Assembly: GCA_029953675.1 (NCBI GenBank)
Contig: JAMWBK010000011.1
Span: 1,116,001-1,180,000, forward strand
DNA length: 64,000 nucleotides
Reading direction: 5' to 3'
Source: Rhodosorus marinus CCMP1338
Lineage: Eukaryota > Plantae > Rhodophyta
The notes below the pieces were generated by a model. That model saw nothing but the letters and a program-made list of their open reading frames with translations. It did no database searches and had not been told where the DNA came from. The translations under genes were made by a program, and so were the position numbers. Positions 1-39,488 of this stretch are shown in pieces (position 1 is the stretch's first letter; the number at the start of each line of letters is the position of its first letter).

Positions 1-1406
1 CGTAGAAGATTCTGTTGCATCTCCTGGCCGGTTCGGTGCTTCCGCAGCAGCCAAATCTTCCGCTCAACGACTTTTAGGACCGGCGCTAAGCCGGTTGGAA
101 ATCTCAAGTCGACAGTTTCGGCGTTTTTCCTGCTGAGATTCTGTAACATGATGTAACCCTTGTCTCGATTGGCGACAGCGTGCACGGCCAGGTTGGGCGT
201 GTTGGAGTAGGAGTACACGAAGTCGCCCTCGATGCCTTTCAAGAGCTCAAAGTACTTCACCAAAGGCGTCCATTTTTGCTTCCTGTCTTTGCCGCCCTCA
301 GTCAATGCCCACGGATACCTGTTCCAGTGGTTACACCTGCGATCGTTTGGGTCGAGGATCAGAAACGGAATGATCTTGAGGACGCTATCGTGGATTCTTA
401 GCGTGCTCATGAACGCGCTGAAAGCCTCTGAAAGGATAAAAAAGTCGCGACTATTCAGGGGTTTGGCAGATATATAGTGCTCCTTGTTGTACCACCGGGT
501 GTCATAGCCCCCAGATTCTGTAATCATATACTTGAACGGAGCAGATCGGTTGGCGTGGTAGAAGTAGTTCTCCAGAAGGTCCAGGTTGGCGTCTTGAACC
601 GCCCCACCGGTGTTGTAAACATGCTCGGAGAAGAAGCTCAGACATCCTGCTTTCAAAGCGTTGTCGATGAAGTTCTTCGTGCGCACGCGCCAGCGGTCAA
701 AGTCATCCTGATCTGGTCTTGCCGTCGCCGCAGCTGGACCTCCAACCATGAAAAAATTATCTTTCGATGTCACGCTCGCACAGAATCGACCAGTAATCTC
801 GCCAAGTCTCGCTACCACGCTCTCTTGCTTCTCATTGGGGAGCTTGAAGTCCCTAGACCTTGTAAACGGCTCGTTGAAAGTCTCGATGTACTTTGGCGGA
901 GGATACCCTTCCTCCGCGTTGAAAAAGTATTCAAGAAACTTCGGAACCCATTTTGCCGCAGCCTCAATTCGGCTTGGTGGATCATAGAACTTTTCAATCA
1001 CATCGGCCTTGTCGACTGCTACTCGATCAGAGCTAAGAAACCGTTTCTCCAACGGATCGCACAATCTACAGGTTGTCCTTTTAGCAAATAATATCCCGTC
1101 TTCAACTGCAGAATCCATTCGGTTCGGGAAGTTGTCAGACGCGCCGAACGCGCCCTCACCGGCTGACCGACCAAACTGCACCCCCAGGTCATCCATTACG
1201 TATTCCATCATCTCCCGAGCGTTCGCTGGAGAACCGCTATTCCCATGGGCTTGGACAAACCGTGCACGGCTAAAATCCCGCTTTTCGTTCGTGACCAACG
1301 TCGCCCAAAAGTCGACCGTCACCGTCGCCCCCATGGCTCCGGAACTCAGAACCAACACCGCGGTGAGGACACCCACCAGAGCTCCCACACAGTTCCTTGG
1401 TTTCAT
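1..1406 (-). CDS. GH86-like beta-porphyranase/agarase paralog 1 (secreted; 3' end beyond window start; absent from ORF track)
   Basis: Manual translation from ATG at 1406 gives MKPRNCVGALVGVLTAVLVLSSGAMGATVTVDFWATL...KYIETFNEPF...MVGGPAAA...FSEHVYNTGGAVQDANLDLLENY...MITESGG...RYPWAL..., read open to position 1. It is collinear with the three other paralogs and has a signal peptide and both catalytic-Glu motifs. Confidence 0.88.
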   Translation of the reverse strand, partial: MKPRNCVGALVGVLTAVLVLSSGAMGATVTVDFWATLVTNEKRDFSRARFVQAHGNSGSPANAREMMEYVMDDLGVQFGRSAGEGAFGASDNFPNRMDSAVEDGILFAKRTTCRLCDPLEKRFLSSDRVAVDKADVIEKFYDPPSRIEAAAKWVPKFLEYFFNAEEGYPPPKYIETFNEPFTRSRDFKLPNEKQESVVARLGEITGRFCASVTSKDNFFMVGGPAAATARPDQDDFDRWRVRTKNFIDNALKAGCLSFFSEHVYNTGGAVQDANLDLLENYFYHANRSAPFKYMITESGGYDTRWYNKEHYISAKPLNSRDFFILSEAFSAFMSTLRIHDSVLKIIPFLILDPNDRRCNHWNRYPWALTEGGKDRKQKWTPLVKYFELLKGIEGDFVYSYSNTPNLAVHAVANRDKGYIMLQNLSRKNAETVDLRFPTGLAPVLKVVERKIWLLRKHRTGQEMQQNLL

Positions 1407-3184: not shown

Positions 3185-5161
3185 TTAACACTGGTCCTTT
3201 CCTGTGAGTGAATTCAACAGGCAGCAAGAACCTCCCCCGCAGGTGTCTACCTCCAACAAAAAAGTGCTGATGTAACCCCCTGAATCCGGAAACTTGACCC
3301 GCACGACAGGGTTCTTTTGAGATGCGAGAAACTTGAGAGGAACCGATATTTCGTACGTCCCAAAATAGGTCTTGTGGTAGTCCCTCTTGCCGCCGGAAAT
3401 CCTCGGGTCAAAGTTGGAGAATTTCTTTCCGTTAATCCATACATCTGGCTTGTTTTTTAGACTCTCGCGTCGATTTTGAGATATCCGCACTCTCGCAACA
3501 CCCGATCGAGAAGGTAGTCTGGCAAAGGTCGCTCTTATGGCCCTTCCCTTCTCTATTCGATACGGAAAGTTTAATCGTTTTCCCTTGTCAGTGGAAACCC
3601 TCATGACGTACCGCCTGAAACGCCCAATCGATCGCTTCTCGCTCATCTTTTTCTTGAAGATCACTTGCATCACGTACATGGCCTCTGGTCGGAGAAGGAT
3701 GTTCTTTGGCACAGACTTTCTGCCCTTGTTGCTCCAAATAATCTTCCCAGCGCGAGGTATTTCCTGCTTTCGGTCTGCTCGTCCTGGCTTCCTAGCGTTA
3801 AGCCATACCTGCCGGATGATGACCTTCTTCGCTGCTCGTCCTACCCCGTAGGGAAGCCTCAAAGATGTGCGGTGGGTTTTTCTCGGATGTAGGTTCTGCA
3901 TCATGATGAACCCAGACTGGCGATTCGCCACAGCGTGGACTTTGATGTCTGCGTGTGAAGAGTGTGAGAACGCGAACCGACCGCTGACTCCCCTCAACAG
4001 CTGAAAGTACCGAAGGAGAGGAGTCCACCTGATCTTTTTGTTTCCCACTTTTTCGATCAACGACCACGGATATCGGTATTTTTTCGTACTCCGTGGATCA
4101 GTAGGATCCAGGGTCAGGAACGAGACAATCTTCTGAACGTTGTCGTGGACCCTCAGCAGCGACATGAAATTCTTGAAGTTTTCGGCAATGATCAGAAAGT
4201 CTCTGCCCGATCGAGGCGGACTGGCGACGTTCTTTCTCTTGCTGAACCACGTTTTGCTGTAGGAACCCATCTCGGAGACGACGTACTTCATGGGTTGTCT
4301 CTTCTTGTTTCTTCGAGCCGTATACGTCTCCATCAGATCCAAGTTGCCGTCGAGAACACCCCCGCCAGTATCGTAGAGATGTTGAGATACAAAGTCCAGG
4401 CATCCAGCAGACTTCGCTTGGTCAATGAAAAGCCGGACTCGTCGCTTGAAGTGGTTGAAACCCTCGTAGTGAGGCCTCGTGAAGGCTGTTGCTGGGCCGC
4501 CGATGACCATCCCTGGGTTTCTTGCCTTCACGCTTTTGCAGAGCCTTCCACATATCCTGGCAAGTCTCCGGATGACACTGACCTCAGACTCGCGACCACT
4601 CCGCCGGAACTCCCTCCACCTTATAAGGGGTTCGTTCCAGCACTCGTAGAACATGGGCTTTGGTAGTCCCTTCCCCTTGTTGAAGAACAACTCAAAGTAT
4701 CTCGGTGCAAAGCTTATAGCTGCATTGGTTTTCGCCTTACTCTTGTGGAACTCTTTCAGCACGTCGGCCCGATCTGTAGCGATTCGATGCGGATTGATGT
4801 TCTTAGTAAGCAGCGGATTGTATTTCGGATCCTTTGCGTTGATTTTCTTCTGCCCATCGCGCCTCAATCTCGCTAGACTTAGTCGTCGCGGAAAGTTGTT
4901 GGATCCGCTGAATGGTCCCTCATTTGATGATCTACTGAAAGAAACCCCTAGGTCATTGACCATATACCTCATAAATCCCCGTGCATAGATCGGAACGCCA
5001 AAGTTTCCGTGTGCGTTGACAAACTTTCTTCGGTTGAAATCTTTCTTCCCATGTGTCCTCAACGTCGTTGCAAAGTCGACGGTGATCCTCTGCGCACCAG
5101 CATGATGAGAACACGCCAAAATCAGGAGTGCTCCCAGCAGTAAAACAGATCCCAGCTTCAT
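3185..5161 (-). CDS. GH86-like beta-porphyranase/agarase paralog 2 (secreted, catalytic module only, K/R-rich), 658 aa
   Basis: Intronless ORF with a signal peptide. Motifs FYECWNEP, IGGPATAF, FVSQHLYD, NLDLMETY and VVSEMG, plus a C-terminal beta-sandwich, match the layout I recall for bacterial GH86 porphyranase A. Confidence 0.85.
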   Translation of the reverse strand: MKLGSVLLLGALLILACSHHAGAQRITVDFATTLRTHGKKDFNRRKFVNAHGNFGVPIYARGFMRYMVNDLGVSFSRSSNEGPFSGSNNFPRRLSLARLRRDGQKKINAKDPKYNPLLTKNINPHRIATDRADVLKEFHKSKAKTNAAISFAPRYFELFFNKGKGLPKPMFYECWNEPLIRWREFRRSGRESEVSVIRRLARICGRLCKSVKARNPGMVIGGPATAFTRPHYEGFNHFKRRVRLFIDQAKSAGCLDFVSQHLYDTGGGVLDGNLDLMETYTARRNKKRQPMKYVVSEMGSYSKTWFSKRKNVASPPRSGRDFLIIAENFKNFMSLLRVHDNVQKIVSFLTLDPTDPRSTKKYRYPWSLIEKVGNKKIRWTPLLRYFQLLRGVSGRFAFSHSSHADIKVHAVANRQSGFIMMQNLHPRKTHRTSLRLPYGVGRAAKKVIIRQVWLNARKPGRADRKQEIPRAGKIIWSNKGRKSVPKNILLRPEAMYVMQVIFKKKMSEKRSIGRFRRYVMRVSTDKGKRLNFPYRIEKGRAIRATFARLPSRSGVARVRISQNRRESLKNKPDVWINGKKFSNFDPRISGGKRDYHKTYFGTYEISVPLKFLASQKNPVVRVKFPDSGGYISTFLLEVDTCGGGSCCLLNSLTGKDQC

Positions 5162-5758
5162 TTAGGAGAGCTCTGTTCCACCACCGCTACAATTCTGTTC
5201 TGGTTGCTCCTCCCACCAAACCGCTTACGGGTTGCTTCCATTCGGCGGCTCAGTACGTTGAGGCAGAGTTTGATGTTTATATACCTTATCGCGAAGGGGA
5301 TTTGACGCTCCTGCCAACTCTCACATCTTTTTTTTTCGGTTGCTCTTCATTGAACACACCCGAACAACAACGAGAGGGTGTTTCCACACCATTTTCATAC
5401 CGAAAATTGTGACCCAACCACCGCACCACGTCAGCCTCCTCGTCAGCCGACTTTGACATCCTCGCGTCACCACTAAGCAGTCGGGCCAACCCCCAGCCCA
5501 AAAAACACACAGAGGATGACTCAATTCGAGACACAGTTTCTCTACCAAATTTTACTCTAGAGGGAGAACAAAAACATATCCATCGCGATTCCAGAACCCG
5601 TCAGATAATCCAAAAAACGAAGATTTTCAACTCCTGCTCATCCTCCAGGGCAAGTCCCTATCCACTACATGCTTCAGTGTCCATCAACGACCGTAGCACA
5701 GCCTAAAACCCAATTCAAGCGGAGGGAGACACTTTGCTGAAGCTTCGCTAATGAGGTT

Positions 5759-6034
5759 GGAAGGGGGGCTATGCGGAGCGAACATAGCCGCTCTGAGTCT
5801 TGCCGCCCTTAATTAAATCATAAGACACGTTCATACTCGTTGGTCTCAATCACAAAGACCACCCGCCAAAACGCCTCTTCTACGATGGTCGTACTCAAGG
5901 ACGTCTAATTCCACGGGGTAGTTGACCACTATTCGGATTCAGAGCTCAGGGAGGGGTTTGACCGGGGTATATCATTCTGTGGTTCTTTCAACACCCAGAG
6001 GGGCTATATACCGCTTCGCGTAGCCCTCCCTTCC
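5759..6034. repeat. Pair of ~40-bp imperfect inverted repeats (5759-5798 / 5993-6034), each itself a hairpin; MITE-like or structured element
   Basis: Reverse complement of the left arm is ACTCAGAGCGGCTATGTTCGCTCCGCATAGCCCCCCTTCC. The right arm is ACCCAGAGGGGCTATATACCGCTTCGCGTAGCCCTCCCTTCC. Internal stems are GGCTATG/CATAGCC and GGGCTA/TAGCCC. Confidence 0.6.
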
Positions 6035-8439
6035 CCCGCCCGCTCCCTTCCACAAAGCCACCACAGGAAAACGCTCCTGCCGATTGAATTCGTTTCGATT
6101 TCTCATCCGTTGAAACGAGTTCCTTTAAAATTCACAAAATACAAATATAACATTTATCTTTTTTGTAATTATTTCCATGGATTTTGGTCGCGTTGATCAC
6201 GAAAGGATTTATGAAAAAATAAACTCCTGTCGATGGAGTTGGTAATTTTGATTATCGAAATATTTTGCGCATTTTCGAATTGTACAGAAAAATAGGAGTT
6301 GTGGATCCTGTCACGACAGATGGCGATCTGTTTTAGGGTTAGATCGCTCTATATTTTGGGAATTCATGGACTAGATGAGTATTTAAGAAGATTATCGATT
6401 AAATTTAGATGGGGACGGATGTTGTATATTGTTTAGTTGAAACTATTGTCCACATGTGGTAATCTTACAATGTTTTTTGGGGCGGTAGCGGTGCCTAAAA
6501 ACTGTTGCATGTGTATTTTCGGATGAATTGGCGGTACGGAGAGATTGGTGGTTGGTTGGAATGGGGGTTTGGAATGATGTCGGTGGAGAAGCGTAGGGAT
6601 ACAAAGGTTCTGCATAGGGAACATGATGAGATGTGGTAGATGTGAGAGGGAAGGCCATGCGACGCTCCTAGTCAAGCTTTGAATTTGCGCGAGTTATTTT
6701 GAAACGTGTACTGTTAGTTGAAGCGAGTGGAACGGTGGGTGGGAATCGGTGAGCCTCAAAGGAAGGTACCCTGAGGCTCCCGACGACAGTAACGCCGGCG
6801 GCGTAGTGTTCTCGTGGATCACTGCATCATAGACTCGTACATGGAGCTTTGAAACTGCTCAGGGATGTTCTGAATAGGGTTCCATGGCTCAGCCTCGCGG
6901 GGAATGTGAACAGCACCGCGGCTTTCGATGCTTGAATGAGCGTCCACGAACAAATGCCTCCTCGATTCAGTATGCGGAAAAGCTCCTGAATCCACGTAAG
7001 CGCCTCGGTTTTTGATAGATCTTTAGCTGGCGATGCGTTTACTAAGCTGGGCACGTGAAAGGTTGATGGCAAAGTCCATTTGCGGCGAACATATCTGCGC
7101 ACGTTTGCCTAGAAAAGCAGATATAGGCAAATCATCCCCACTGCGATCCGAAGAACGGCTAGCTATGTACGCGGCCATGCTGTTTTTACGGGATTATGGA
7201 CATTGCAAATAACGTTTTCCTGGTTGGAATAGATGCGAATAGGGTTTCAGAGAACCATCAAGACAAACGCGCTTATGGATGTTGGGGTTCCACGTTCAGC
7301 TTGAAGGTCTTTTGTTCTTGCTTCTTGGTCAGATCAAGCAGAAACTATTACGTTGTACGAGATAATAGTCCAAACGCACGGGGGCTGAACAAACCGCAAC
7401 AGACCCCCAACGACACGATTTTAGTATGCACGTCATGTTAAGGACAATGCAACTGGGCGTTCACCAAGAAACTAGCATGTGACCACGCAGACGCGTAATA
7501 CAACCGTCGCAATCGGGAGAGCTGCTTCAGTAGAGCACGTTCAAATCGCCTGCTATATCCGATTTCCTTCCTCAGGATGCAGCCGCTGCGGTTTTCAGTG
7601 ATCCAGAATCAGAAGATAGTAGGGGAGTACTTTACGAGCTGGATCGACTGGGAGCCATGACAGAAGCCACAGGAAGATAGTACGAAGTAGCGACGAGCAC
7701 AATCGGATTCTGAACGGAAGATTGGTGGTTTCAACGTAGTCTTCTCTATTCCCGACGGTGGAGTAGACGTGAGCCGCTTCAACGAGAAGAAATTCCTTCC
7801 CGCTGATCGCGTTTGTCGTGGGTGAGTTCATTGTCAGTATTTTCATCCTCGTCGCGAGGTTGGGTCAAGTGGGTTGGGTTTTTCGGTATTCCCCGCTCTC
7901 ACAAGTGGGAAATGGCAAGGAAGGATGGTTTTCACAATTTAATGGGCAATCTGTCGGGGAATAGGCCATTCCATGGGGTCCGTTCGAACATTTGGAAAGG
8001 TGCGGAGTAAATTTTTTATGGATGTCACGGGTTTTTCGTAGGGAATGTGAAAATACGCTTGGTTTCCAGGGTTTAGGTAGGGAACAATTTGGGAATAAAG
8101 TTTGGTTTCTTGACCTACGCCGAAAACAGACTGCTTTCGCACTTTGATTCTGGGCAGAGCACGAACAAGAGTGGGGGAGCTTGGGCGTTTGCAAAGTGGT
8201 CCGCTGAGAGGATTGGGAAGCAATTCTTCGGGAAGTTGTTAAACAGAGGGCAGGGGTCCACGGAGTATGTGTAGAAAACTTACTTGAGCTCGACTCGGGC
8301 TTGGGAGCATCTCCCAGTTTGTAGATGGCTAAATTTGTTTGCAGGAAGTGGACTGATCGCTATTCTCACAAGAGCATTGGAAGGTCCAGGAGAGTGCGAA
8401 AATGGAAGCGGCTGCTTGCGCACTCAGTGTCAACAAATA

Positions 8440-9398
8440 CGGGGAGTTCCACCTCCTGCTTCGGGAAAATTTTTATATGCTACTGAGCGTGTAGAAACGC
8501 GAAATATTCCCTTCTTTGTGGACCCTTTAGCATGCACAAGTTTCTGGAATTCGTTTCTTCTATGAGAAACCCTTGACGAAAACCACAACTCCTTAGTTTT
8601 TATTTTTGAACTCACACAAGCTGGATCACTTTCGTATCGGAACTCTCTGAAAAACAGAGTTCAGCAGCGTCTTCATTCAATTCAAAAAAAGGCTTTATCG
8701 GGTTGAACCATGGAGCAACGTTTCCTCTTCTGAACTGCCAATCTGTGGCGTGTTCACTTCGTCTCCTTTCAGGACTTCAATCATCTCCTCATCGCCTTCT
8801 GAGCAACTGTCTCTCATTCAGGACTTGCCTTCCTGAATTTCTCGTTCTGGTCCGTTAAAATCGCTCCCTTCCCATGAATGCTCCAACTTCTCGATCCGCG
8901 AGAACTCCTTTCCACAGTTGATCTTCTTGGAAAGTTTCCCGCCCGACTCCTGGATATATTGAAATACTTAACAAAAAGACACGTAAACTTTACGCCCAAT
9001 AGAACAAGCGTCGTGCCCAGATCTACCATTCACAAATCCCTGAAGAAAGAAGAATCCTTATTATTGGTGGTAGTTTATTAATATGCGCATAAAACTAAAC
9101 TAATATTTAAAATAGAAATAAGTTGTTAATATTCGCATAAAACTAAAGTGGTATTAAAAATACTACTTGATACAATTTAATCTTTTTACTTTATCCAATG
9201 AATGATCGCTAGTTCACATGTTAGCCAATCATTCAATTCCACACCCACCGGTGACTGCCAACCAACTGAGCCTTTTTTTGAAGTGCTTGGTAGACTCCGC
9301 ACGATGGAAATGGGTATCGGAGCGATCGGGGAGTTCCACCTCCTGCTTTGGGGAAATTTTTTATATGCTACTGAGCGTGTAGAAACGCGAGATATTCC
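8440..9398 (+). repeat. Dispersed ~71-bp direct repeat (8440-8510 and 9327-9398)
   Basis: The segment cggggagttccacctcctgctt...ttttatatgctactgagcgtgtagaaacgcga(a/g)atattcc occurs twice with few differences. The flanks are unrelated. Confidence 0.85.
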
Positions 9399-10771
9399 GT
9401 GCTTAGACTCTCTGGCGCGGGTGGGGAAAAGATTTCCCAACGCACTATTGGATGCCGGTCTAGGGGTCAAACGCTCGAATGCGAGCTCGGGTTTCCAACA
9501 GCACCTCCTCTGGTCGGGTTCTGATCGTCGTCTGCCTACTCCCAGACCCCGCAACCCAAGTGGGTGATGGTGTGGAAACATTGAACTGATCGTTTCAACC
9601 GTTCGACTAGGAGGTTGGCATAGACGGCGGGAAATGGGCACTCTCAGCCGCTTTTCACGGCCTTGCCGTTGAGTGTGGTACGGGTATAAAGATTTGCGAT
9701 AGGCAAAAGTAGTACATCAAGCACGTGCTTAACGAAATTTTGATAGGTACGCAGCAAAATCCTTGATCATCTGTCTAATGCTTCGTGGGGTCAACAAATG
9801 TTGGTGGCAGTTTGAACCCTGCCTAGCGTTGATAATTGAATATCTTCTGGGTATCATACTTAAGCTGAGAATGTGTCGGACCTTTGCACAGATCCTCATC
9901 GGTGATATAGTCCTAGAACCTGCTTGACGCAACTCTTGGGAATTCGTAGGCTTCACCCATGGCCCAAATGAGCACAGCTCGAAGTCTCTCCGATCCACTT
10001 CTTCCCTCGGCCAAAAATGCGCTCTGCACACGGGGACAGAACAAGCGCAGGATCATTGGCGTAAGTTATGCGTATTATTTCAACAAAAGAAACGCCACAC
10101 ATAGGTCTTCACAAGCAGTGGATACTGATCATGAACTGTGGCTTGTACGTTCTACGGCCGAGGAAAACCCAGACATGTGTGGAAAACGATTCATTATCTG
10201 AAAAGCTGCTTTCTCCGTGTCCCAGTGGATCAACACAATTCATCAGGCGTGGAAAAGGTTTTCTGAGTAGCAGTGCGGCGCGAGATGTACTCATCTTCGC
10301 CAGGCCCAGCTGAACTGTTCTCCAATTTACGTACTGTGTTGCAAAAAAAGATCCTCATCAAACCCTAGTTGAATTACTTGAACGAGGAGAAAACGTCCGC
10401 CGGAATTTGTGCTCTGTAGTTCTGCATTGCACCGAGTAGAACACGGTGTGTTCAACATCATCAAGTGTACGCAACCATGCTTTCTCACGACTGGTCTTCT
10501 ACCCATCAACCACACATTAGCTGCAGCTAACTCTATTCGAGAAGATTTTATTCTAAAGTCAAACACCATCCCATAAACATCCCTGGTTTCCGAAACCAAC
10601 GCCTTTAAGCGCCACACCTTTCTTTACTTAAGGTGAATTGTTTCTCATCTCGCACACACAAAACTTCTCCCCCCCCCCCCCCCCCGGCACACCTGCTCGC
10701 ATCCAAACATGTTTTTCAGTTTAAAGAGCATACTCGGGCCTAAGTGCCGATAGTCTCCGATCAAAACCAAT

Positions 10772-14146: not shown

Positions 14147-17100
14147 ATGGCGATTTTTAAGGGAATGTGGTTATCGACAGCTGTCATTGCGGCGCTTTTG
14201 TTGTCGATTGTACAGTGCCAGCGTACGAACCGATTTGAGGCCATTGTGAGGGTAGACTTTGGGACGACGTTGCAGACTGGCGATGTGTCGAGGTTCTCGA
14301 GAAGGAGGTTCATTAACGGGCATGGGAATTTCAAGCCCAACGCGAGGATCCCGGAGGAGATGTTGGATTACCTTACCGAGGAGCTCAAGGTTTCGTTCAG
14401 TCGTTCGAGCGCTGGGCCGTTTCGGGGTGGCAACTTTCCCGACAGGACGACTTCAGCGCAGATTGAGACGGACGGACAGAAAGATCTGTTCCTGAAGACG
14501 TGCAAGTCGTGTAATCGATATCGACTGAGGTTCGTCAGCGACGAAAGGATCGTAACTGACAGTCCGTACCTCATACCAGAGCTGACGAAGACCAGCGCTA
14601 CCACAGCGGCGGCCGCAAAGTACGCCGGAAGGTACTTCAAGCACTTCTTCACTGAGGACGATCGATTCCCAAAGCCAAAGTACTATGAATGTTACAACGA
14701 GCCAATGGGAAAGGCTCGAGAGCTGAAGAAAAAGGGGGAGTCAGACTTTGAATTTGTCAGCAGGATCTCCCAGTTTTGCTCGGACATCTGTGTCGAGGTT
14801 ATGAAGGAAAATCCGGACATGATGGTTGGTGGACCTGCCGCCGCCTTCACGAGGCCCTACTTCAAGGAGTTTGGCCTCTTCAATTCACGAATGAGGAACT
14901 GGATGGACGTGGCCGCAAAGACGAAATGCCAAACGTTCGTGTCGGAGCACCTCTACAACATCGGAGGAACCGTAGCGGACGCAAACATGGACCTGATCGA
15001 GTCGTACTCCGCGTGGCTGAGCGCGGATGGGAAGCCACAAAAGTACATCGTGAGTGAGATGGGTCAGTACGTTTCGAAGTGGTACAATAAGAGTGGATCG
15101 GCGATGGAGGCGCTGCCGGCAAGGGACTTCTCGATCATGCACGAAGCGATGCGAGTCCTGTTGTCGATGATGAGAGTGCCGGACAACGTCCTCCAGGTGG
15201 TTACTTTTATCAATCTAGAGACCATGGCAGATCGGGATATCACGAACGGTAATCGGTATCCGTGGAGTCTGATCGAAGAGAAGAGCAACGGGCGACTAGA
15301 GTGGTCACCGCTGATCAGATACTTTGAGATCTTGGAGGGTATGGATGGAGACTTTGTGTACTCCAGTTCAGACCACATGGACATCACTGTCCACGCCGTT
15401 GCGACGATGAAAGAAGGCTACATTATTATGCAGAACATCGGTTCGCGTAATGTGACCGTCACACTCGAATTCCCGTACGGCAGGGACATGATCAAGGGCT
15501 ACGAGAGAAGACGGTTGGGACTCATACAGAGGGAAAGGACCAAAGCTGAGCGGGATCAGCTGCTTAGATTTGGTGGGGACTTGCTTTGGGACACGGAACG
15601 TGTGGATGCGAACCCGGGTTTCACGACCCAGCTTCCGGATGAGATTATGGTGGAGGAGGACGAAATAACCGTCCTGAAGGTGGTATTCGATGATCCGTCG
15701 AGGGACAACAGGAGAGTCCAGAGAACCAGGCACTACCCCACGAGAATACGAGACCATACAGGAAAAGAGCCCGACTTCCCCGCGCCAATTAGCAAGAACC
15801 GGAAGATTGACTACTACTTCGAGGATGTCCCCAACACTCCCGGCGGTATGGTGGATATCAGAATCTCCCACTCGAGAAAATTTGGGCTATCGGAGAAGCC
15901 CAAGGTGTTCGTGAACAATGTAGAAGTGCCACAGGAGGACTTTAGCGACGACGTCGCAGGCGGATTCAAGCTGTTCGATGAAAACTTTTACGGCGTGTTT
16001 CTGGTTCATTATCATCTTGAGGACCTCGCGTCGAAGACTAGACCGAAGATCTCAGTCGAGTACCCAGACGATGGGGGGCTTATGGTCACGGTAGTTCTGG
16101 AAGTGACCGAATGCACCCGGTCCTCTTGCTGCGTCTTACAACACAGAAAGAACCAGGAGCCATGTAACATTCCCACCGGGGATGTGTTTACTGGGCGGAT
16201 ACGACCGAATCCCACACCCGTACCTGAGCCTACACCAACTCCGACGCCGAGGCCCGAGACTGAGGGCAACCAAGTGCTTTTGGACACGAACTTTGAATCG
16301 AGTTCTTCAAAGGCTTGGAGTCGATCCGGCGGTGCCAAGAAGCAGACAAAAACCAAGCACGGAGGCCAACGTGCCATGGAGCTGCCCTTGGGCGAAGCTG
16401 AGATAAGCCAAGAAGTGGAATTGCTTAGAGGCAAGCGCTATCGCCTGAGGTGCTATTACCTAGGGCGAGTGAAATTGAGCGTTTTCGACTCGGACGGTGC
16501 GGTCGTAGTTGGTGAAAATGAGGCCGTTGAAATTCCGTCTTCGGGCAACAGTAATAGCGCGTGGCACCGGGCCGTGCAGATATTCGACATTAGAAAGTCC
16601 GGAGCTTACAGAATTTTGATCCGTACAAAAGAGAACAACAGCGGGTATGTTGATACATGTGACCTGTATCGGATCGAGAGGCTCGGCACGCCGACGCCGT
16701 CCCCAACGCCTACGCCCACTCCGATGCCTCGAATTGTCGGAGACCAGATTTTCGATAGTCCTGGCTTTGAGTCCAGTTCGAATCCATGGGACAGGAACAA
16801 CGGTGCGAGCTATGAGAGGGCCAGCAGTCTGGTTTACAAGGGCTCCCGCAGCCTCAAGCTTGAAAAGTTCCAATCGACAACTGAGCAGTCAGTGGCGCTT
16901 CGCAAGGGAGGACGGTACCGGTTCAAGTGCTTCGTTCAGGGAGTCGTGAGGATCAAGGTGCGGCTGGGGTCGAAGACGATTGCAAGGACCACTAGTGCAG
17001 ACCTGGAGCCCTTCGAGGGAGGGCCGTGGAGCACGGTGGCCATGGTTTTTACCGTCGACTCGTACGATGATTATACCTCGCAAATCGAGAACACTAGGAA

Positions 17101-19381
17101 CCAACCAGCCTATATCGACGCCTGCACGCTTTACCACGTCGACAAAATTCCGCCGGAGAGTCCCGAGCCGACATCGAGACCCGAACCGACCACTGCCCCG
17201 AGAGAAACCGGCAGGCAGCTCCTAGCCAACGGCTCGTTCGAAGAGAGAACTGGTTGGACGTTGAAGCGGGGCGCAAAGTATCAAAAGCGGGATGAGTACG
17301 CGTTCGTCGGAGGCGATAGCGTTCAGCTTGTGGACGGATCCACCGTCGAGCAGACGGTTGCCCTTCGTGAAGGAGGAAGGTACAGAATGAGGTGTCATTC
17401 CATTGGGGATATTCGTATGGAGGTACTTGACGGTACGCGCTCCGTTACACGATCGAAGGACAGAGACATAACTCAAATTGGAGATGGCCCATGGAACGTT
17501 CTGTCCATGGATTTCAACATCAACAAGTACGACGACTTCAAGGTTAGCGTGTGGAATTTCAGGACGGAATTTGTCTACCTTGATGAATGCACGTTGTACC
17601 ACTTGGACAGGGTTCCACCGAGGACACCGACACCAGAACCAACCCCGGTGGAGACGCCAGTTCCAGTAGTGGGAGATCAACTGCTTAAGAATAGTGGTTT
17701 CGAAGGAGCCTATTCCTGGACGAGGGTGATGGCTGCCTACTTCTCGACGAACGGGGATTTTGTGCAGCGGGGCAAGCAAAGCATGAGGCTGAACAATGGC
17801 TCATCGAACATCAGGCAGAGGGTCGAACTGCGGGCGGGTGGAACGTACCGGCTGCAATGCTATGTGATTGGAAAGGTACAAGCGGAGATTCGTCGGGCCG
17901 GGGCAGCGCTTGCAAGATCGGGGGCCGGGGAGGTTGTTCTGGTTGGGAATGGTCCGTTCAGTCTACTGACCATGGACTTTGATGTTACGAAATATGGGAT
18001 ACACAGCTTGGTGTTGGCAAACGAACAGAATGACCGTTCGTTTGTTGATAGCTGCTCACTGTATAGCGTAGGGGAAACTCCACCACCGACGCAAACACCC
18101 GAGCCTACTCCGAGCGAGACCACCGCGACTACACCAAAACCTACTCCGAGCGAGACCACCACGAAGACGCCTAATCCCACTCCGAGCGAGACCACCGCGA
18201 CGACACCAAAGCCTACTCCGAGCCAGACCACCGCGACACCAAAGCCGACTCAGAGCGAGACCACCACGAAGACTCCTAATCCTACTCCAAGCGAGACCAC
18301 GACGAAGACTCCTAATCCTACTCCGACCGAGACCACGACGAAGACTCCTAATCCTACTCCGACCGAGACCACGGGACCAGTCGTGGGCGATCAGATCCTT
18401 GAGAACAATGGATTCGAGACGCGCCGTGATTGGGATTTCAAGCAAGGTGCTAGCCTTCAGGCAAGCGCAGAGTATGTGTTGAACGGGCTCAGAAGCTTGG
18501 TCCTTCCTGTCTATAGGTCAGGCGTTGAACAAACTGTGAGACTTCGAGCTGGTGGCAAATACAGACTCGTGTGCTTTACGCAGGGTGACGTAAGGATGAA
18601 GGCTTTCCTTGGTTCTCGTTTGCTTGCGAGATCGAACGAAGCGAATCGAAGAATCTGGCAAGGAGGCCCCTGGGAAACTATCAGGATGATCTTTGATGTC
18701 AACACATACGCTGACGTGAAAGTGGACGTCTACAACGGCAAGAACACAGCCGCCCGCGTGGACTCCTGTGTTCTCTATCACTTGAACGTTGTACCCCCCC
18801 CGGAGCCCACTGGGAACCCAACTGTGAACCCAACTGCGAACCCAACTGTGAAACCATCCGTTGAGCCCACGCCGGAGCCAACTCAGACCGAGACTCAGGG
18901 CCCAGATGTTACTGAAACAGAGGCTCAAACCGCACAGGCGTCAGCTACTCCTGATGTAGTGATCGTGACAGACGGAAGGGAACTATTGAGTAATCCAGGA
19001 TTTGAGGAGGGCGACGAGGACTGGACGGTTGTTTCAAGGAGGGCATGGTTCGGGGCTGTTGAGCCGAAAATAGACGGCAGTCGACGCTTGCGCCTCCTCC
19101 AATATGCCGCGGCTGTCGAACAGGCGGTTAGCCTTGACCCTGGCAGATATAGACTGTCGTGCTACGTGATCGGACCCGTCGTTTTGAAGATTTTCAGAGG
19201 AGATGAGCAACTGTTCAAGAGCCTGCCGCTGAACAAGAAGCTTTACCTTGATGGACCATGGAGCACGCTCTTCGTGAGCTTCCGAATCACTTCAGCGGAA
19301 GACTTGAAGCTGCGAATCTTTAACTCTCAGAATTCTGACAGCTTCGTTGATGGCTGCTCCCTTACCGCCGTTGCGCGCTAG
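14147..19381 (+). CDS. GH86-like paralog 3: signal peptide + catalytic module + 6 CBM-like modules with P/T linkers, 1744 aa
   Basis: Intronless ORF with YYECYNEP, VGGPAAAF, SEHLYN and IVSEMG motifs. Six ~135-aa repeats start with G(N/D/R)(Q/E)xxxxxxFE and have a CBM4/9/16/22-like signature (NxxFE...G...Q.V.L..G..Y...C...D.C). Confidence 0.88.
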   Translation: MAIFKGMWLSTAVIAALLLSIVQCQRTNRFEAIVRVDFGTTLQTGDVSRFSRRRFINGHGNFKPNARIPEEMLDYLTEELKVSFSRSSAGPFRGGNFPDRTTSAQIETDGQKDLFLKTCKSCNRYRLRFVSDERIVTDSPYLIPELTKTSATTAAAAKYAGRYFKHFFTEDDRFPKPKYYECYNEPMGKARELKKKGESDFEFVSRISQFCSDICVEVMKENPDMMVGGPAAAFTRPYFKEFGLFNSRMRNWMDVAAKTKCQTFVSEHLYNIGGTVADANMDLIESYSAWLSADGKPQKYIVSEMGQYVSKWYNKSGSAMEALPARDFSIMHEAMRVLLSMMRVPDNVLQVVTFINLETMADRDITNGNRYPWSLIEEKSNGRLEWSPLIRYFEILEGMDGDFVYSSSDHMDITVHAVATMKEGYIIMQNIGSRNVTVTLEFPYGRDMIKGYERRRLGLIQRERTKAERDQLLRFGGDLLWDTERVDANPGFTTQLPDEIMVEEDEITVLKVVFDDPSRDNRRVQRTRHYPTRIRDHTGKEPDFPAPISKNRKIDYYFEDVPNTPGGMVDIRISHSRKFGLSEKPKVFVNNVEVPQEDFSDDVAGGFKLFDENFYGVFLVHYHLEDLASKTRPKISVEYPDDGGLMVTVVLEVTECTRSSCCVLQHRKNQEPCNIPTGDVFTGRIRPNPTPVPEPTPTPTPRPETEGNQVLLDTNFESSSSKAWSRSGGAKKQTKTKHGGQRAMELPLGEAEISQEVELLRGKRYRLRCYYLGRVKLSVFDSDGAVVVGENEAVEIPSSGNSNSAWHRAVQIFDIRKSGAYRILIRTKENNSGYVDTCDLYRIERLGTPTPSPTPTPTPMPRIVGDQIFDSPGFESSSNPWDRNNGASYERASSLVYKGSRSLKLEKFQSTTEQSVALRKGGRYRFKCFVQGVVRIKVRLGSKTIARTTSADLEPFEGGPWSTVAMVFTVDSYDDYTSQIENTRNQPAYIDACTLYHVDKIPPESPEPTSRPEPTTAPRETGRQLLANGSFEERTGWTLKRGAKYQKRDEYAFVGGDSVQLVDGSTVEQTVALREGGRYRMRCHSIGDIRMEVLDGTRSVTRSKDRDITQIGDGPWNVLSMDFNINKYDDFKVSVWNFRTEFVYLDECTLYHLDRVPPRTPTPEPTPVETPVPVVGDQLLKNSGFEGAYSWTRVMAAYFSTNGDFVQRGKQSMRLNNGSSNIRQRVELRAGGTYRLQCYVIGKVQAEIRRAGAALARSGAGEVVLVGNGPFSLLTMDFDVTKYGIHSLVLANEQNDRSFVDSCSLYSVGETPPPTQTPEPTPSETTATTPKPTPSETTTKTPNPTPSETTATTPKPTPSQTTATPKPTQSETTTKTPNPTPSETTTKTPNPTPTETTTKTPNPTPTETTGPVVGDQILENNGFETRRDWDFKQGASLQASAEYVLNGLRSLVLPVYRSGVEQTVRLRAGGKYRLVCFTQGDVRMKAFLGSRLLARSNEANRRIWQGGPWETIRMIFDVNTYADVKVDVYNGKNTAARVDSCVLYHLNVVPPPEPTGNPTVNPTANPTVKPSVEPTPEPTQTETQGPDVTETEAQTAQASATPDVVIVTDGRELLSNPGFEEGDEDWTVVSRRAWFGAVEPKIDGSRRLRLLQYAAAVEQAVSLDPGRYRLSCYVIGPVVLKIFRGDEQLFKSLPLNKKLYLDGPWSTLFVSFRITSAEDLKLRIFNSQNSDSFVDGCSLTAVAR
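18085..18375 (+). repeat. Intragenic 36-bp (12-aa) tandem repeat, TPSETT(A/T)(T/K)TP(K/N)P x ~8
   Basis: Seen in both DNA and translation, between CBM-like modules 4 and 5. Confidence 0.85.
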
Positions 19382-20276: not shown

Positions 20277-23200
20277 TTACATAGCACAGCTGTCTACGTA
20301 GGTCCAGCTCGCCCGTTCCGTCTTGACGCTGACGATGTAGTTGCCATCATCGGGGGCCGTAAAATGGAGAGTCCGCTTCTCCCATCTGGTATCAAGGGAT
20401 TCGGTTCTACGATCAGTAATCACCATCACGACTCCATTTTGAATTATCCTCATGAAAACACTGGTCCTCTTCAGAAAAACACACGAAAGACTGTACTCGC
20501 CTCCCGCCTCAAGCACGACCCTCTGCTGGGCTTCGCTCATGCCAATTCGGAGTCTCAAGCTGTGGGTTCCTTGATAAACGGTTAGACTGTCGATAACCGC
20601 ACTTCCGATGAAATTCCATGGAGCAGGCTTGCCATCGTCAAAGCCTGCATTCACGAGGATCTGACCATCAACAACCGGAGTGGTGGGAACTGGTTTCTCA
20701 GAGGGACTGAGCGTTGCCGTTGGTGAGGGCGTACCCTCCGATGGCGATGTCGTGGGAGGATTCGTAGGCCGTGGCGTCGAAAGCTCTGTAGGTACCGGTG
20801 TCGGGGAATCCGTCTGCATCGGCGTCGGAGGAATCGTTGGCACTGCCGTTGGAAGGTCCGTAGGCACTGCCGTTGGAGGTTCCGTAGGCATTGCCGTTGG
20901 AGGTTCCGTAGGCAATGCCGTTGGAGGTTCCGTAGGCACTGCCGTTGGCGGATCAGTAGGTTCTGGCGTTGGGGAATCAGTAGGCTCTGGTACATCGACC
21001 TCGAAGACTTGAGCTTGGTCGACATACACGAGGTGGCCTCGTGAACTTCCAAAGCTGACCTTGTAAGTAGCCCTCGAGTCCGTTACAAACGACATCCCAT
21101 GCTCCTGCCAGCTGGGTGCTATTCTGTTCTGCGATTTTTCCTGGAACACCACGCCGCTTCCGTCACTGACGCTGATCATCAAAACACCAGGACCATAGAC
21201 CATCACTCGAATCGCATACGTAGCACCCTTTAGCAATTCCACCTCCTGCGACACGCTGCTTGTGTCGAAATCCAATTTGCACGACCTGGAACCTTCGAAA
21301 TTTCGGATTGTATCGTACCTAGCAGCACCCTCTAAGACCCATCTCTCGGATCCGCCTCCAGGTCCAAACCCTGGTGCCAAGAACAGCTGCAATGATCCGT
21401 TTGGAATCTCTGGCAATGGAGATGGCGTCGGAGTGAGCTCCGGCGTCGGAGAGCTAGTTTGTGATGGAGTTGGTCGAGGCGTATCCGTTGGAATGAATAC
21501 CGTCTCCTCCAGCGAGCAGTCATCGACAACTGCAAAGCTTGAAAATTCGGTGAACAGATTGATCTCGTACACTCCCTGCCTCAATGTCGTAAACAGCAGA
21601 GTCCTCTTCGTCCACACGGGGCCCGAATCACTGGGATCACTCTCGTTTCGAGCGATCTCCTCCCCGTTCACATCGACGCTCATTATCAGCTCCCTGTTGT
21701 TGCTCACGAAACACGTCAGCAGAAACTGTCTATTCCGCCGGAGGGCTGCTTCCTGTTTCACCCTCGAAACAGAGCGGGTCGGGAGTCTCACGCTTCTGGC
21801 TCCACTTCGTACCAGACTTGTTTCCACTCTTGCCGAACCCGAGAATACCCACGGTCCTTTTGTCCCCTTCTCAAAGTCCGGGTCCAACAACAGCGGTGCG
21901 ACTGTCGGCGTTGGCGATGGCGTTGGCGTTGGCGTTGGCGTTGGCGTTGGCGTTGGTGTTGGCGTTGGTGTTGGTGTTGGCGTTGGTGTTGGCGTTGGTG
22001 TTGGCGTTGGTGTTGGCGTCGGTGTCGGCGTTGGTGTTGGCGTTGGCGTTGGCGTTGGTGTTGGCGTCGGTGTCGGCGTTGGCGTCGGAGTTGGCGTTGG
22101 TGTTGGCGTTGGTGTTGGCGTCGGTGTCGGCGTTGGTGTTGGCGTTGGCGTTGGCGTTGGTGTTGGCGTCGGTGTCGGCGTTGGCGTCGGAGTTGGCGTT
22201 GGCGTCCGCACGAATTCAAGAAGCGAGCAGTCATCGACAATAGCGAAATCTGTAGGATCGGTGGACAGCTTGATCGTGTGGTCGCCACTTCGACTACTCG
22301 TCCAGGAAAGCGTTCTCCTCGCCCATCCGTCGGCATCTCCCGGCGGTGGATTGGATCTCGCAACGACGTTTCCACTACCTATCAATTCCATGATCAGAGG
22401 CAAATTCCTCCTAACTCTACATTCAAGTGTGTACTCGTACAACTCCGTTAGCGACACCACTTGTGTCGCCGAGTTCTGGCCCACTCGAAGCCGAAGACTA
22501 AAGAACCCATCAAGAACAACGTCAGGATCAAAGTAACCGTTCTCGACAACCCAGTTGCCCTGAGTGTTCAGCTCAAAGCTAGGATCCGCCAGAATCTGGG
22601 CTGGAGGCAGTGCAGTTGGCAATTCCGTCGGGCCAGGGCTCTGAGTAGCCTCAGGATTCACCTCATTCAGCGTACAAAAGTCAATAAAGGCCGAATCGTC
22701 CCTTCCGTTGCTAAGGCTCACAATGTGTAGACCGTTGTTTCTAGCTTCGAATTCCACGATTCTCTCACCCCATCTGGTAGTCAGCTGATTCCAATTTCTG
22801 TTGTCCGATACAACGATCTCTCCAGTTAATTCACGAGCCACGCTGATTATAAACGGACTGTTGTTCAGCACTATACATCGGATCCTATATGTGCCGTCCT
22901 TCTCCAGCTGCAAAGACTGTGAAGCGGAACCAATTCCGGGTGGAAGCCGTAGGCTTCGACTACCTTCAAACACCGTGTTTGTTTCAATCCTCGCGTTCCC
23001 AGTGTACACCCAATCTGGCCGGCTAGCCTTCTCAAAACCTGGATCCAGCAGCAGCTGAGGGCCCAGGGATGTGGTGACTTCCGTTGGCTCTGGCCCCATC
23101 GTTGGAGTGGGAGTCTCCACGCTCTCTGTAGTCTCAAACACAGTACAGTAGTCCACCAATGCGGACTCTAAGTCTCCGTTCAGTATGGCAAACTCGTGTG

Positions 23201-26048
23201 GTCCGTTCTTCGGGGCCTCGAATATGACCTGCTTGTAAGCCCAATCTGTACCCACCACTGGAGTCACCCAGTTTGCTGTGTTCGACGCTACCGTTTCCCC
23301 CCGCGAGCTTCGCACCACCAAGTCTAGATCACCACCTTCCACCAGGTAGCATCGGTACCTATAGTTCCTTCCTTTCTCCAGTGGAGCCCTTTCACTCGCC
23401 TCCGCGTCTCCCATTGGAAGCCTCATGCTCATCGTCCCCTCAAGCGCGTTCGATTCATAGAACGCGGCAGTACCTTTCAGGCTCCACTTCGCTGGGGCGA
23501 GATCTTCAAAGCTTGGATTGTCTATCAGCTGCTCACCCACGGTACTGGGATCATTTGGGGGCTTCCAGTTGCTTACTGGAATCGGTGTGCTCTGTGCAGC
23601 ATCTCCAACGAATGTCGGTACAAGAGACTGCGGATAAAGGGTACAAGCATCAGCACTTCCGGCCTGGGACGCTGTCGTCGACAGAGTTAGCTCGTAAATG
23701 TCCTTGTCGGTCGAGTAGAAATCCATCTGTTTTAGTCTCCACGTGGACCCATCGATAGCGGTTGAAGGGCCTTCCTCGTCAACCAACATGAGGAACAGGT
23801 TCGACTGCTTGCGGATGTAAAAGTTCACAGATCCACGCACATGACAAACGAGTCGGTAGCCCAGGTTGGCCTTAAGGTAGATCACCTGCATCGCCTCTGC
23901 AGTTTCTTGGCCGAGCCTCAAGCTGCTTCCGCCCCAGTAGGCCGATGTGGTTGAAATAGATGCACCACCGGACAGCTCCCAGTCGTCCGAACCCTTCTCA
24001 AAGCTCGGATTCTTCAACCTCTGTCCGGTCTCGGGAATCGTCCTAGGCTGATCCCTAGGGTCGTTTGCTGGCTCTGGACAGGCGAATGGTGAGGCTCTGC
24101 CTCCGAGAAGACAGCAGGAACCACCGCTGCATTCATCGACCTCGATCGTCACGGTACTAACGTACCCAGATGAATCGGGGTATAGAACATCAACGTACGG
24201 GCTGGGGTTTGAGTTCAGTATAAGAACCCCTACGGGAATCACGAACACCCCAAAGTACATGCTGTTGTCGTTGCGACCGCCTCCAGGGATCCTCTCGTTA
24301 ACTGATGGTACCTCCTCTCCGTTGATGAAGATCCTGGGACGCGGCTCTTTGCTCCGAACCCGCGCATGCGCTACCCTGATATACGCCATGGCGTTCTTGG
24401 AAGAAGGTATGTCCGCAAAGTAGAATCGGATCGATTCGTCCTTTCGGATCGGCACGGGAAATTCCACACCATTCCCAGTCGCGTCAGTCACCCGCTGAAG
24501 ATAATGTCTCGATCGCTCGACTGTTCTACGGTCTATAATGGGCTTCTTAAACATCACTTCGAGTACCGTCATTCCCTCCGGACGCATACGAATCGTCTCT
24601 GGAATCGCATTCATCGTCTCGTTCGACCACATCACCTTGCCTGGTCGGCGAATATTCTGCCTTTCATCCTCATCCGTCGAGTCCTCATCTCTCAACCAGA
24701 GCCTCCTCTCTACGACGGTTTCAACCTCCTCGATTCCATACGGAAAGTTGAGCGCGACGTCGTAGCTTGTCTCCGCGTGAGTGTTCTGAAGCATTACATA
24801 GCCTCTGTCCGAGTTCGCCACGGCATGGACTTTGATATCTGTTTCTGGAGAGTAGGAGTAGGTAAAAGAGCCCTCGATACCTCTCAACAGCTCCCAGTAG
24901 TACAGAAACGGAGTGTAGATATATTCTTCATCAGAGGTCTTCTCAACGATCGACCAGGGATAAGGGTTCTCCATGCGCTGCTTCGCTGTGGTGATCTCCA
25001 GCGTATGAAAGCAGATGAGCTTGATCAGGTTATCATGGACTCGGAGCTGACTCATCATGATCTGGAAGCACTCCTTCATGATCACAAAGTACCTTCCTCC
25101 CAAGGGCTCGCTCGAGATTCTCGTACTCTTGCTGTACCAGCTTCTTTGGTACGCTCCAGACTCAGTGATCGCGTACGGCATCACCTTTTTGGGGGTATGC
25201 ACACTATTGACATATGTATAGGTCTCGACAAGGTCTATGTTCGCATCCTGTACGGATCCACCTCCGTCGTAGATATGTTCACTGACAAAGCCGAGACAGT
25301 CATCTTGCATGGTGGTGTCCAGCCAGAGCTTCATTCTGTTTCTGAAGAGGGCAAATTCTTGATGATGCGGCTTTGCGTTTGCAGCCGTAGGACCACCGAC
25401 TAGGATGTCTGGATGCTCTGCAGTAACGCTCTTGCAGATCTCGTTGCATTGCTCGGCGATTCGAGTGTTTACGTCAATTTCTGTCTCGTCGGGACGGCCT
25501 TCAAGCTTGAGCGTCTTCCATTTGTTGAAGGGCTCGTTGAAACACTCGTAGTAACCAGGTCTGGGATACCGCACCGAGTCATCGAAGAACCACGTGAAGA
25601 AGTCCGCTGTGTACTTGCGAGCCGATTGTGTGAGCGATTGGCTGTTGATCCACTGCCTCATAACCACAGCATCGTCGGTGACAAATCTTTCTCTCGTAAT
25701 GAATCGTCTACGGTTCGCATCGGAGTTCTCATTGGACTTGAACTTCACGTCTTGGTCCCCATCAGCTTGCGCAGTGTCCAACGCATTCGGAAAGTTATCC
25801 GAACCTCCAAATGGTCCACCAGCTGTCCTTCCAAAATGAACTCGTAGCTCGTCGGCGAAATACTCCATCTTATCCTCGATTACCCTGACTACAGAATAGT
25901 CTCCATGGGCGTTGATGAGCCGCTCCCTGTTGAATTCGGATACGCCATTTGTGCTCAACGTGGTCCAAAAGTCCACATCTACCTCCACTGCGGTGCTCCA
26001 TTCCGCAAAAAGTATGAGCACCACCAGAACCCCTTGCCGGATACCCAT
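20277..26048 (-). CDS. GH86-like paralog 4: signal peptide + catalytic module + 7 CBM-like modules with P/T linkers, 1923 aa
   Basis: Intronless ORF with [31 protein letters not shown] and AITESG motifs. Seven repeats start with (Q/P)xLxxPxFE-like sequences. It lies tail-to-tail with paralog 3. Confidence 0.88.
20815..20965 (-). repeat. Intragenic 24-bp (8-aa) repeat PTA(V/L/M)PT(E/D/I)(P/L) linker
   Basis: ggcactgccgttggaggttccgta-like units; translation [24 protein letters not shown]... Confidence 0.8.
21907..22206 (-). repeat. Coding hexanucleotide array of 50 units encoding (TP)~50
   Basis: GG(C/T/A)GT(T/C) hexamers on the + strand, translating to about 100 aa of TPTP... in paralog 4. 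Confidence 0.95.
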
Positions 26049-39416: not shown

Positions 39417-39488
39417 GTTCCTGTAGTATAGGGGTCAGTACACCCGCCTGTCACGCGGGAGACCCGGGTTCAATTCCCGGCGGGATCG
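39417..39488 (+). tRNA. trnD: tRNA-Asp(GTC)
   Basis: Cloverleaf: anticodon arm CCCGC-CTGTCAC-GCGGG (GTC at 39450-39452), T arm CCGGG-TTCAATT-CCCGG, G73 discriminator, and downstream T tracts. Confidence 0.95.

Follow-up and report, generated by a model that had tools for sequence, protein, structure and literature searches.

GH86 agarase/porphyranase-type glycoside hydrolases encoded in the nuclear genome of the unicellular red alga Rhodosorus marinus

Introduction

Does a red alga carry, in its own nuclear genome, enzymes of the agarase and porphyranase type and, if so, where did they come from and what might they do? The question is raised by a 64,000-nucleotide stretch of DNA (the window) from Rhodosorus marinus CCMP1338, a unicellular red alga of the class Stylonematophyceae. 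The window lies on JAMWBK010000011.1, a 1.44-Mb contig of assembly GCA_029953675.1, with record base 1,116,001 as window base 1. A sequence-only reading had described four paralogous, intronless genes in its left part, each encoding a secreted hydrolase resembling glycoside hydrolase family 86 (GH86), and had proposed that a gene of bacterial origin had expanded locally into a toolkit for remodelling the alga's own wall. We refer to these paralogs, in window order, as W1, W2, W3 and W4. The R. marinus nuclear assembly is long-read and chromosome-level (31.2 Mb), with 8,392 genes and 24,821 introns, on average about three introns per gene (PMC10250338).

Results

Four GH86 genes in the window

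All four open reading frames (ORFs) are present. W1 (3–1406, minus strand) comprises 468 codons and is open to the window edge; with its ATG at 1406–1404 the N-terminus is complete, and the C-terminal part lies beyond the window start. The minimal form is W2 (3185–5161, minus strand), a 658-amino-acid protein with a leader (residues 1–23), a (β/α)8 barrel and two β-sandwiches, and without an array of carbohydrate-binding modules (CBMs). W3 (14147–19381, plus strand; 1744 amino acids) starts with a GH86 module (14147–16126) that is followed by six CBM-like modules of about 133 amino acids each (16265–19378), and W4 (20277–26048, minus strand; 1923 amino acids) has a GH86 module at 24069–26048 followed by seven such modules (20280–24026). 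Over their N-terminal ~660 residues the four proteins are 38–42% identical to one another (W1 and W2, 42%), with 103 invariant columns. A tblastn search found no further GH86 fragments or pseudogenes elsewhere in the window.

We searched W2 against all chains in the PDB using phmmer. The best match was 5TA1 (7.6e-21), which with 5TA0 (both near 1e-20) represents BuGH86 of Bacteroides uniformis, followed by Aga86A_Wa (8H97, 2.3e-19) and the B. plebeius porphyranase BpGH86A (4AW7, 6.2e-12). These alignments span residues 146–638 and strong scores were reached with GH86 enzymes only, with GH39 xylosidases ranking after them at E > 0.05. In Pfam, the porphyranase C-terminal domain (BPA_C) exceeds its curated cut-off in W2 (6.9e-12), W3 and W4 (5.6e-10), and the catalytic domain Porphyrn_cat_1 does so in W4 only (1.6e-06). 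Among the proteins found with a profile of the four paralogs are ones named agarase, beta-agarase and beta-porphyranase A.

The structure of W2 was predicted with AlphaFold2 (AF2). An alignment of the four paralogs alone gave a predicted local distance difference test (pLDDT) score of 46.7 and was replaced by a 61-sequence alignment, which yielded a model with a pLDDT of 92.5 and a predicted template modelling score (pTM) of 0.93. The model displays the three-domain GH86 body, comprising a (β/α)8 barrel and two Ig-like β-sandwiches. Structural comparison in Foldseek, over ~670 columns, gave template modelling (TM) scores of 0.80/0.84 to 5TA1, 0.78/0.83 to 8H97 and 0.72/0.83 to 4AW7, compared with at most 0.56 for other families of clan GH-A (GH30, GH39, GH51 and GH79).

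The two glutamates expected of a GH86 active site are intact in each paralog, as the sequence-only reading had noted. They lie in the motifs FNEPF and ITESG in W1, WNEPL and VSEMG in W2, YNEPM and VSEMG in W3, and FNEPF and ITESG in W4. The predicted acid/base and nucleophile, respectively, are E179 (870–872) and E297 (516–518) in W1, E177 (4631–4633) and E297 (4271–4273) in W2, E185 (14699–14701) and E304 (15056–15058) in W3, and E172 (25533–25535) and E296 (25161–25163) in W4, each on the strand of its gene. W2 E297 aligns with the sole position at which 5TA1 and 5TA0 differ, a difference that represents the E322Q nucleophile mutant of BuGH86 (PMC5849685). In an alignment of 114 sequences, the Glu of the NEP motif and the nucleophile Glu are present in 15/15 red-algal sequences and at least 98/99 others, and R77, E173, N176, G222, H261 and Y263 are kept in 15/15 and at least 97/99, respectively.

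All four N-termini open with a short run of charged residues, followed by a hydrophobic core (best 10-residue Kyte–Doolittle mean 2.9–3.3) and then by small residues, so that the signal peptide claimed for each protein corresponds to a hydrophobic leader in all four. A hydrophobicity scan found no transmembrane-like segment after the leader in W1–W4, and we infer with good reason that the products are secreted.

A nuclear red-algal locus

The genes in the right half of the window are ordinary eukaryotic ones, with products that include a PPPDE peptidase, a pseudouridine synthase, a C2-domain phospholipase-D-like protein, a triple HSP20 protein, a HAD hydrolase, a PWWP protein, a Rieske protein and a lactate/malate dehydrogenase. 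The phospholipase-D-like gene (35972–38688, plus strand) is split over four ORFs and has at least four exons, with GTAAG...CAG and GTGAG...CAG boundaries; two of its introns, at ~37058–37182 and ~37535–37649, could be read and are short and of the GT-AG type. The GH86 genes match their neighbours in composition (GC content 0.50–0.54, GC content at third codon positions ~0.6) and in relative synonymous codon usage (r = 0.80), and the spacers between window genes measure 0.9–9 kb, unlike the packing of bacterial genes. The proposal of a eukaryotic, probably red algal, genome is thus borne out by a Rhodosorus nuclear contig, spliced neighbours and host-like codons.

W1–W4 are each single-exon genes. 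Since every ORF is uninterrupted and homologous to GH86 along its whole length, none of the four requires an intron, and the contrast drawn earlier between these intronless genes and their intron-bearing neighbours holds. A further paralog, P0005, which is on contig 6, likewise has a single exon, and its neighbours are XPG, Cpn10 and cyclin genes. We regard membership of the four genes in GH86, together with their location in a red-algal nucleus, as very nearly certain.

Transcription and selection

A 2.28-kb contig (L001) from Joint Genome Institute (JGI) sample 3300016967 is colinear, without gaps, with window positions 5254–3117 at 89.9% nucleotide identity. The colinearity takes in both untranslated flanks of W2, and the contig is transcript-like; the sample series presumably consists of culture transcriptomes of the Marine Microbial Eukaryote Transcriptome Sequencing Project (MMETSP). 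L001 encodes an orthologue 93% identical to W2, and the ratio of nonsynonymous to synonymous substitution rates (dN/dS) for the pair is 0.12, which indicates that W2 is under clear purifying selection.

Full-length proteins with a GH86 body and CBM-like modules were found in MMETSP transcriptomes of both Rhodosorus and Bangiopsis. Among the transcriptome-derived Rhodosorus proteins, P0002 (977 amino acids, called complete) and P0004 (1226 amino acids) carry both parts in one chain. Members of this GH86 family are transcribed, and the possibility raised by the sequence-only reading that the genes might lack expression is not supported, given the MMETSP homologues and the W2 orthologue on L001.

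A red-algal clade and its origin

To place the four genes in the wider family, we used an exhaustive profile search of 1.84 billion representative proteins, which returned 444 matches at E ≤ 1e-3. The 150 best of these were inspected, 29 were looked up for names and about half of those had one. Full-length sequences among the 150 were placed in a neighbour-joining tree that was midpoint-rooted, without an outgroup. Fifteen of them form a red-algal clade (bootstrap 100/100), and an inner subclade that holds all four window genes has the same support; the two subgroups of the clade are only ~25% identical. The clade members with names all come from Rhodosorus or Bangiopsis: the R. marinus genome (KAJ8900832.1, KAJ8904124.1 and KAJ8904075.1), Rhodosorus MMETSP0011 transcripts and Bangiopsis sp. 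CCMP1999. Three more R. marinus products, KAJ8905636.1, KAJ8905638.1 and KAJ8903300.1, are fragments too short for the tree, and BLAST sets them beside W3 and P0003. The remaining clade members derive from Logan runs SRR22824290 and SRR22824282, and these GH86 contigs probably come from another stylonematophycean alga. Four single-gene contigs of 3.6–5.6 kb from those runs (L004–L008) encode P0006, P0010, P0011 and P0019, which represent both subgroups; P0010 and P0011 also carry the Pfam domain Porph_assoc.

The R. marinus genome holds about nine GH86 loci on five contigs. The closest relative of W3 is P0003 (KAJ8900832.1; 52% identity), on another contig, and that of W1 is the Rhodosorus MMETSP protein P0002 (47%), a strain transcript without an annotated counterpart. 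Because the loci are so dispersed and the nearest relatives of W1 and W3 lie outside the window, the cluster reads as a group of old tandem duplicates from a dispersed family and as only part of the expansion. The earlier idea of local expansion therefore holds for the tandem copies in the window and does not extend to the family as a whole.

The red-algal clade has cysteines of its own. In the 114-sequence alignment, C208 occurs in 15/15 red-algal sequences and 0/99 others, and C254 in 12/15 red-algal sequences, while sequences of the inner clade (clade A) carry a C-x4-CC(-x10-C) motif beyond the last sandwich. Such cysteines fit disulfide formation in a eukaryotic secretory pathway.

All named relatives outside the clade are bacterial. 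They comprise Flammeovirga, Saccharicrinis, Marinoscillum and a Rikenellaceae metagenome-assembled genome (Bacteroidota), Lentimonas (Verrucomicrobiota) and Agaribacterium (Gammaproteobacteria). Since these outsiders are all bacterial, the economical reading points to one old transfer from a bacterium to an alga, followed by expansion, and GH86 in Rhodosorus is probably of bacterial origin, as had been proposed. In the midpoint-rooted tree the red-algal clade is sister to all 99 other sequences and is not nested within the bacteria. This position, together with the depth of a clade whose subgroups have diverged so far, is the basis for the reverse history, in which GH86 arose in early red algae for their own galactan matrix and was later captured by marine bacteria; we consider this very improbable. 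Patterns derived from the four paralogs gave no confirmed match in bacterial and archaeal genomes, because they are too clade-specific, and a word-indexed protein search returned a single relative for W2 and no relative for W1.

CBM-like modules and linkers

The six modules of W3 and the seven of W4 are carried on Pro/Thr-rich linkers, and at least 90% of the 13 share a conserved pair of cysteines (YRLxC ... DxCxL). Whole W4 matches Pfam CBM_4_9 (PF02018) at 2.3e-11, with 44.7 bits against a cut-off of 25.9. When the modules were scanned singly, one of the 13 matched at E < 0.001 (9.7e-4). A profile of all 13 modules searched against the PDB found 4Q8K (2.8e-10), 8XMZ (1.1e-05), 4XUP and 2XOM, chains that carry modules of this kind. 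We assign the C-terminal modules, on these profile matches, to the CBM4/9-type β-sandwich group as putative glycan binders. Other algal members of the clade have 0–3 copies of a similar module, which appears in only 2 of 134 non-algal matches.

Two linkers are repetitive at the nucleotide level. Between modules 4 and 5 of W4, a (Thr-Pro)n linker of ~100 amino acids (21907–22205, minus strand) is encoded by about 50 near-perfect tandem copies of GGCGTT, identified by Tandem Repeats Finder (TRF; repeat family D1), an array whose length is likely to be polymorphic or to have been compressed in the assembly. The corresponding linker of W3, also between modules 4 and 5, is rich in Thr, Pro, Glu and Lys, spans ~105 amino acids (18082–18372, plus strand) and consists of eight 36-nucleotide units (TRF, repeat family D2).

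Public annotation and literature

The GenBank annotation gives no product for W1 or W2. Its W3 model (P0007) is a 1297-amino-acid protein identical to residues 448–1744 that starts at Met448 and lacks the barrel, and its W4 model is a 1266-amino-acid product covering only 20277–24554, again without the catalytic barrel. The barrels are therefore unannotated in all four genes (14147–15487 in W3 and 24555–26048 in W4). Other GH86 gene models in the R. marinus annotation look fragmentary. That of P0003 lacks the middle of the barrel. On a 3.19-Mb contig, KAJ8905638.1 (P0120, an N-terminal 154 amino acids) and KAJ8905636.1 (P0012, a C-terminal 266 amino acids) appear to be parts of a single W3-like GH86 gene, because their locus tags, NDN08_002144 and NDN08_002142, are two apart. 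As the genes are missed or truncated there, censuses of carbohydrate-active enzymes based on the public Rhodosorus annotation undercount GH86.

The GH86 domain is detectable in databases, and family members carry the automatic UniProt name 'Beta-porphyranase A C-terminal domain-containing protein'. Our literature search found no paper that joins GH86 with Rhodosorus, Bangiopsis, Stylonematophyceae or Porphyridium, so that no earlier characterisation of a red-algal GH86 emerged from the searched literature. Those GH86 papers mentioning red algae, among the ones examined, have bacteria or gut microbiota as their subject, and the R. marinus genome paper makes no mention of agarase, porphyranase, glycoside hydrolases or CAZy (PMC10250338).

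Other features of the window

The 9-kb spacer between W2 and W3 (5162–14146) is unusually long against a genome average of ~3.7 kb per gene. It contains no Pfam-matching ORF, transposon domain, Rfam match or annotated gene, and holds one 57-nucleotide direct repeat pair (8460–8516 and 9348–9404, 91% identical). A single tRNA-Asp (GTC) gene (39417–39489, plus strand) lies just downstream of the phospholipase-D-like gene. The triple HSP20 protein is encoded by an ORF at 44476–45429 (minus strand) that places three HSP20/alpha-crystallin domains in tandem on a single polypeptide, which is uncommon for small heat-shock proteins.

Discussion

The enzymes of Rhodosorus extend a known family to a eukaryotic form whose multi-module architecture is unusual. 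They share with bacterial GH86 enzymes (BuGH86, Aga86A_Wa and BpGH86A) the three-domain fold, the NEP acid/base, the E322-type nucleophile and core residues, and export signals at the N-terminus are common to both, although those of the alga are predicted. The differences are that the Rhodosorus genes reside in a eukaryotic nuclear genome instead of a polysaccharide utilisation locus, that the red-algal clade has its own cysteines (C208 and, in clade A, C-x4-CC), that the algal proteins add up to seven tandem CBM-like modules on (TP)n linkers, and that they presumably remodel a matrix made by the producer itself instead of serving catabolism. The modules themselves resemble CBM4/9/16/22/61-type modules, as the profile matches to xylanase C (4XUP) and to the module of an arabinogalactan endo-β-1,4-galactosidase (2XOM) suggest, but differ in being weak matches when taken singly, in their conserved cysteine pair and in their rarity outside algae.

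There is a precedent for such a system in the GH16 enzymes of other red algae. CcGH16-3 of Chondrus crispus is a red-algal β-porphyranase of inferred horizontal origin from bacteria (PMC9771727). As in Rhodosorus, the red-algal GH16 enzymes (Chondrus, Porphyra and Gracilariopsis) are the algae's own galactan-cleaving hydrolases related to marine bacterial agarases and porphyranases, and they are likewise read as the result of old horizontal transfer and duplication, with a proposed part in remodelling the extracellular matrix (PMC9771727). The two systems differ in fold (a GH16 β-jelly roll as opposed to a GH86 TIM barrel), in host (Florideophyceae and Bangiophyceae as opposed to Stylonematophyceae) and in number (three Chondrus genes as opposed to about nine Rhodosorus loci), and while GH16 activity is experimentally proven, that of GH86 in the alga is predicted.

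We propose that an ancestor of Rhodosorus and Bangiopsis took up one GH86 gene from a marine bacterium, and that this gene would then have ameliorated fully, duplicated in tandem and dispersed to about nine loci. The products would enter the secretory pathway and act outside the cell as retaining endo-β-galactanases, with the NEP Glu as the acid/base and the Glu of (S/T)E(S/M)G as the nucleophile. They may act on the sheath of the alga itself, a cell-bound, sulfated polysaccharide rich in galactose; cutting it could enable the cell to expand and divide and its daughters to separate, or let the sheath turn over. The giant W3 and W4 proteins might be held in the matrix by polyvalent binding, and the 658-residue W2 might diffuse freely. 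In the Stylonematophyceae the polysaccharide is cell-bound only, and it is galactose-rich (58–87 mol% Gal) in three of five species, namely Bangiopsis subsimplex (78), Rhodaphanes (87) and Chroothece (58) (PMC9031348). The alga's own matrix is our preferred substrate because of this galactose-rich bound polysaccharide, the expansion and conservation of the family in a reduced genome, and the red-algal GH16 precedent, although for action on the sheath in particular we lean only slightly that way. We infer an endogenous agarase/porphyranase toolkit, and we hold the explanation as a whole, the role included, to be somewhat more probable than not.

Several points weigh against this explanation. 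The signal peptides were judged by hydrophobicity only, and the enzymatic activity, localisation and expression of these four in particular are predictions. The red-algal clade is only about 20–25% identical to characterised GH86 enzymes (18–20% in structural alignment), so little that specificity cannot be transferred from them. Agarase T82 and M396 (BuGH86) and porphyranase F77 and S326 (BpGH86A) are determinants of the −2 subsite (PMC5849685), and agarase or porphyranase specificity was not readable from that subsite, where the HMMER alignment lacks the T82 region and chain position 399 is not Met. The direction of transfer rests on taxonomic distribution among the 150 best matches and is not proven, because the midpoint root sets the algal clade beside the bacterial sequences and not inside them. 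The public W3 and W4 models start downstream of the barrel and, if they are real transcripts, the giants are non-catalytic. Finally, the Rhodosorus polymer is reported simply as a sulfated heteropolysaccharide containing Glc, Gal, Xyl and GalA (PMC12073197), and an agar- or porphyran-like β-1,4-Gal linkage in it is predicted.

A placement of the proteins in some other family of clan GH-A (GH39, GH30, GH51 or GH79), with no more than a resemblance to GH86, has next to no probability: weak GH39 matches do occur in Pfam and the PDB (E 0.0085 to 0.4), but the GH86 matches are 15–20 orders of magnitude better and only GH86 structures match all three domains, and the worry that the best hits might fall in GH39, GH5 or GH79 has not been realised. 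Bacterial contamination or a chimeric misassembly, also considered in the sequence-only reading, could be suspected from intronless genes of an otherwise bacterial family, but is effectively excluded by the spliced eukaryotic genes flanking them on the same 1.44-Mb long-read contig, by host-like codon usage and spacing, and by the colinear transcript-like contig of another strain with its low dN/dS; homologues on four other contigs and in the transcriptomes of two genera, and the clade's own C208, argue the same way. The public models, which begin at Met448 in W3 and cover only part of W4, would suit a different history in which both genes are expressed as annotated, as CBM-array proteins without a barrel, and the upstream GH86 parts are untranslated relics. 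This is highly doubtful, since the 447 and ~500 upstream codons are open, in frame and start with a leader peptide, they keep every invariant GH86 residue and the same level of identity to their paralogs, P0002 and P0004 join GH86 and CBM modules in one chain, and other GH86 models in the same annotation are fragmentary too.

The role is where the alternatives carry more weight. Many Stylonematophyceae are epiphytic, and the secreted enzymes might attack foreign agar or porphyran, for attachment to or penetration of macroalgal hosts or for sugar scavenging; the characterised GH86 enzymes are all catabolic agarases (EC 3.2.1.81) or porphyranases (EC 3.2.1.178), and CBMs arrayed in tandem on long linkers typically belong to enzymes that attack insoluble external substrates. 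We judge this unlikely, as the window shows no downstream agarolytic partners of families GH117, GH50 or GH2, Rhodosorus is unicellular and phototrophic and is cultured without algal hosts, and the class itself makes galactose-rich bound polysaccharide, while about nine loci and purifying selection in a reduced genome of 8,392 genes fit a housekeeping function in the wall better. Alternatively, the enzymes may be mainly transglycosylases that break sheath galactan chains and rejoin them, in the way that the XTH enzymes of plants act on xyloglucan. Clan GH-A membership with both glutamates intact implies a retaining mechanism, the chemical prerequisite for transglycosylation, and a divergent clade with its own residues and a wall-anchoring architecture would suit such a role. 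To our knowledge no GH86 transglycosylase has been described, and hydrolysis and transfer are indistinguishable in sequence; we think this quite unlikely, and keep hydrolytic remodelling of the alga's own sheath as the preferred reading.

The searched literature treats GH86 as a bacterial tool for eating red-algal walls, and an expanded, constrained and transcribed red-algal family changes this picture. The concept is not new, since the GH16 precedent had already established it, but GH86 in Rhodosorus provides a second, independent case of red algae keeping bacterial-type galactanases, here in an early-branching and little-studied class. For glycan biotechnology, the family offers eukaryotic GH86 enzymes, predicted to be disulfide-stabilised, and a new CBM-like module. 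It predicts that the sheaths of Stylonematophyceae would contain an agar- or porphyran-like β-1,4-galactosidic linkage, and it may offer a way to study how cells surrounded by a bound galactan sheath manage to grow and divide.

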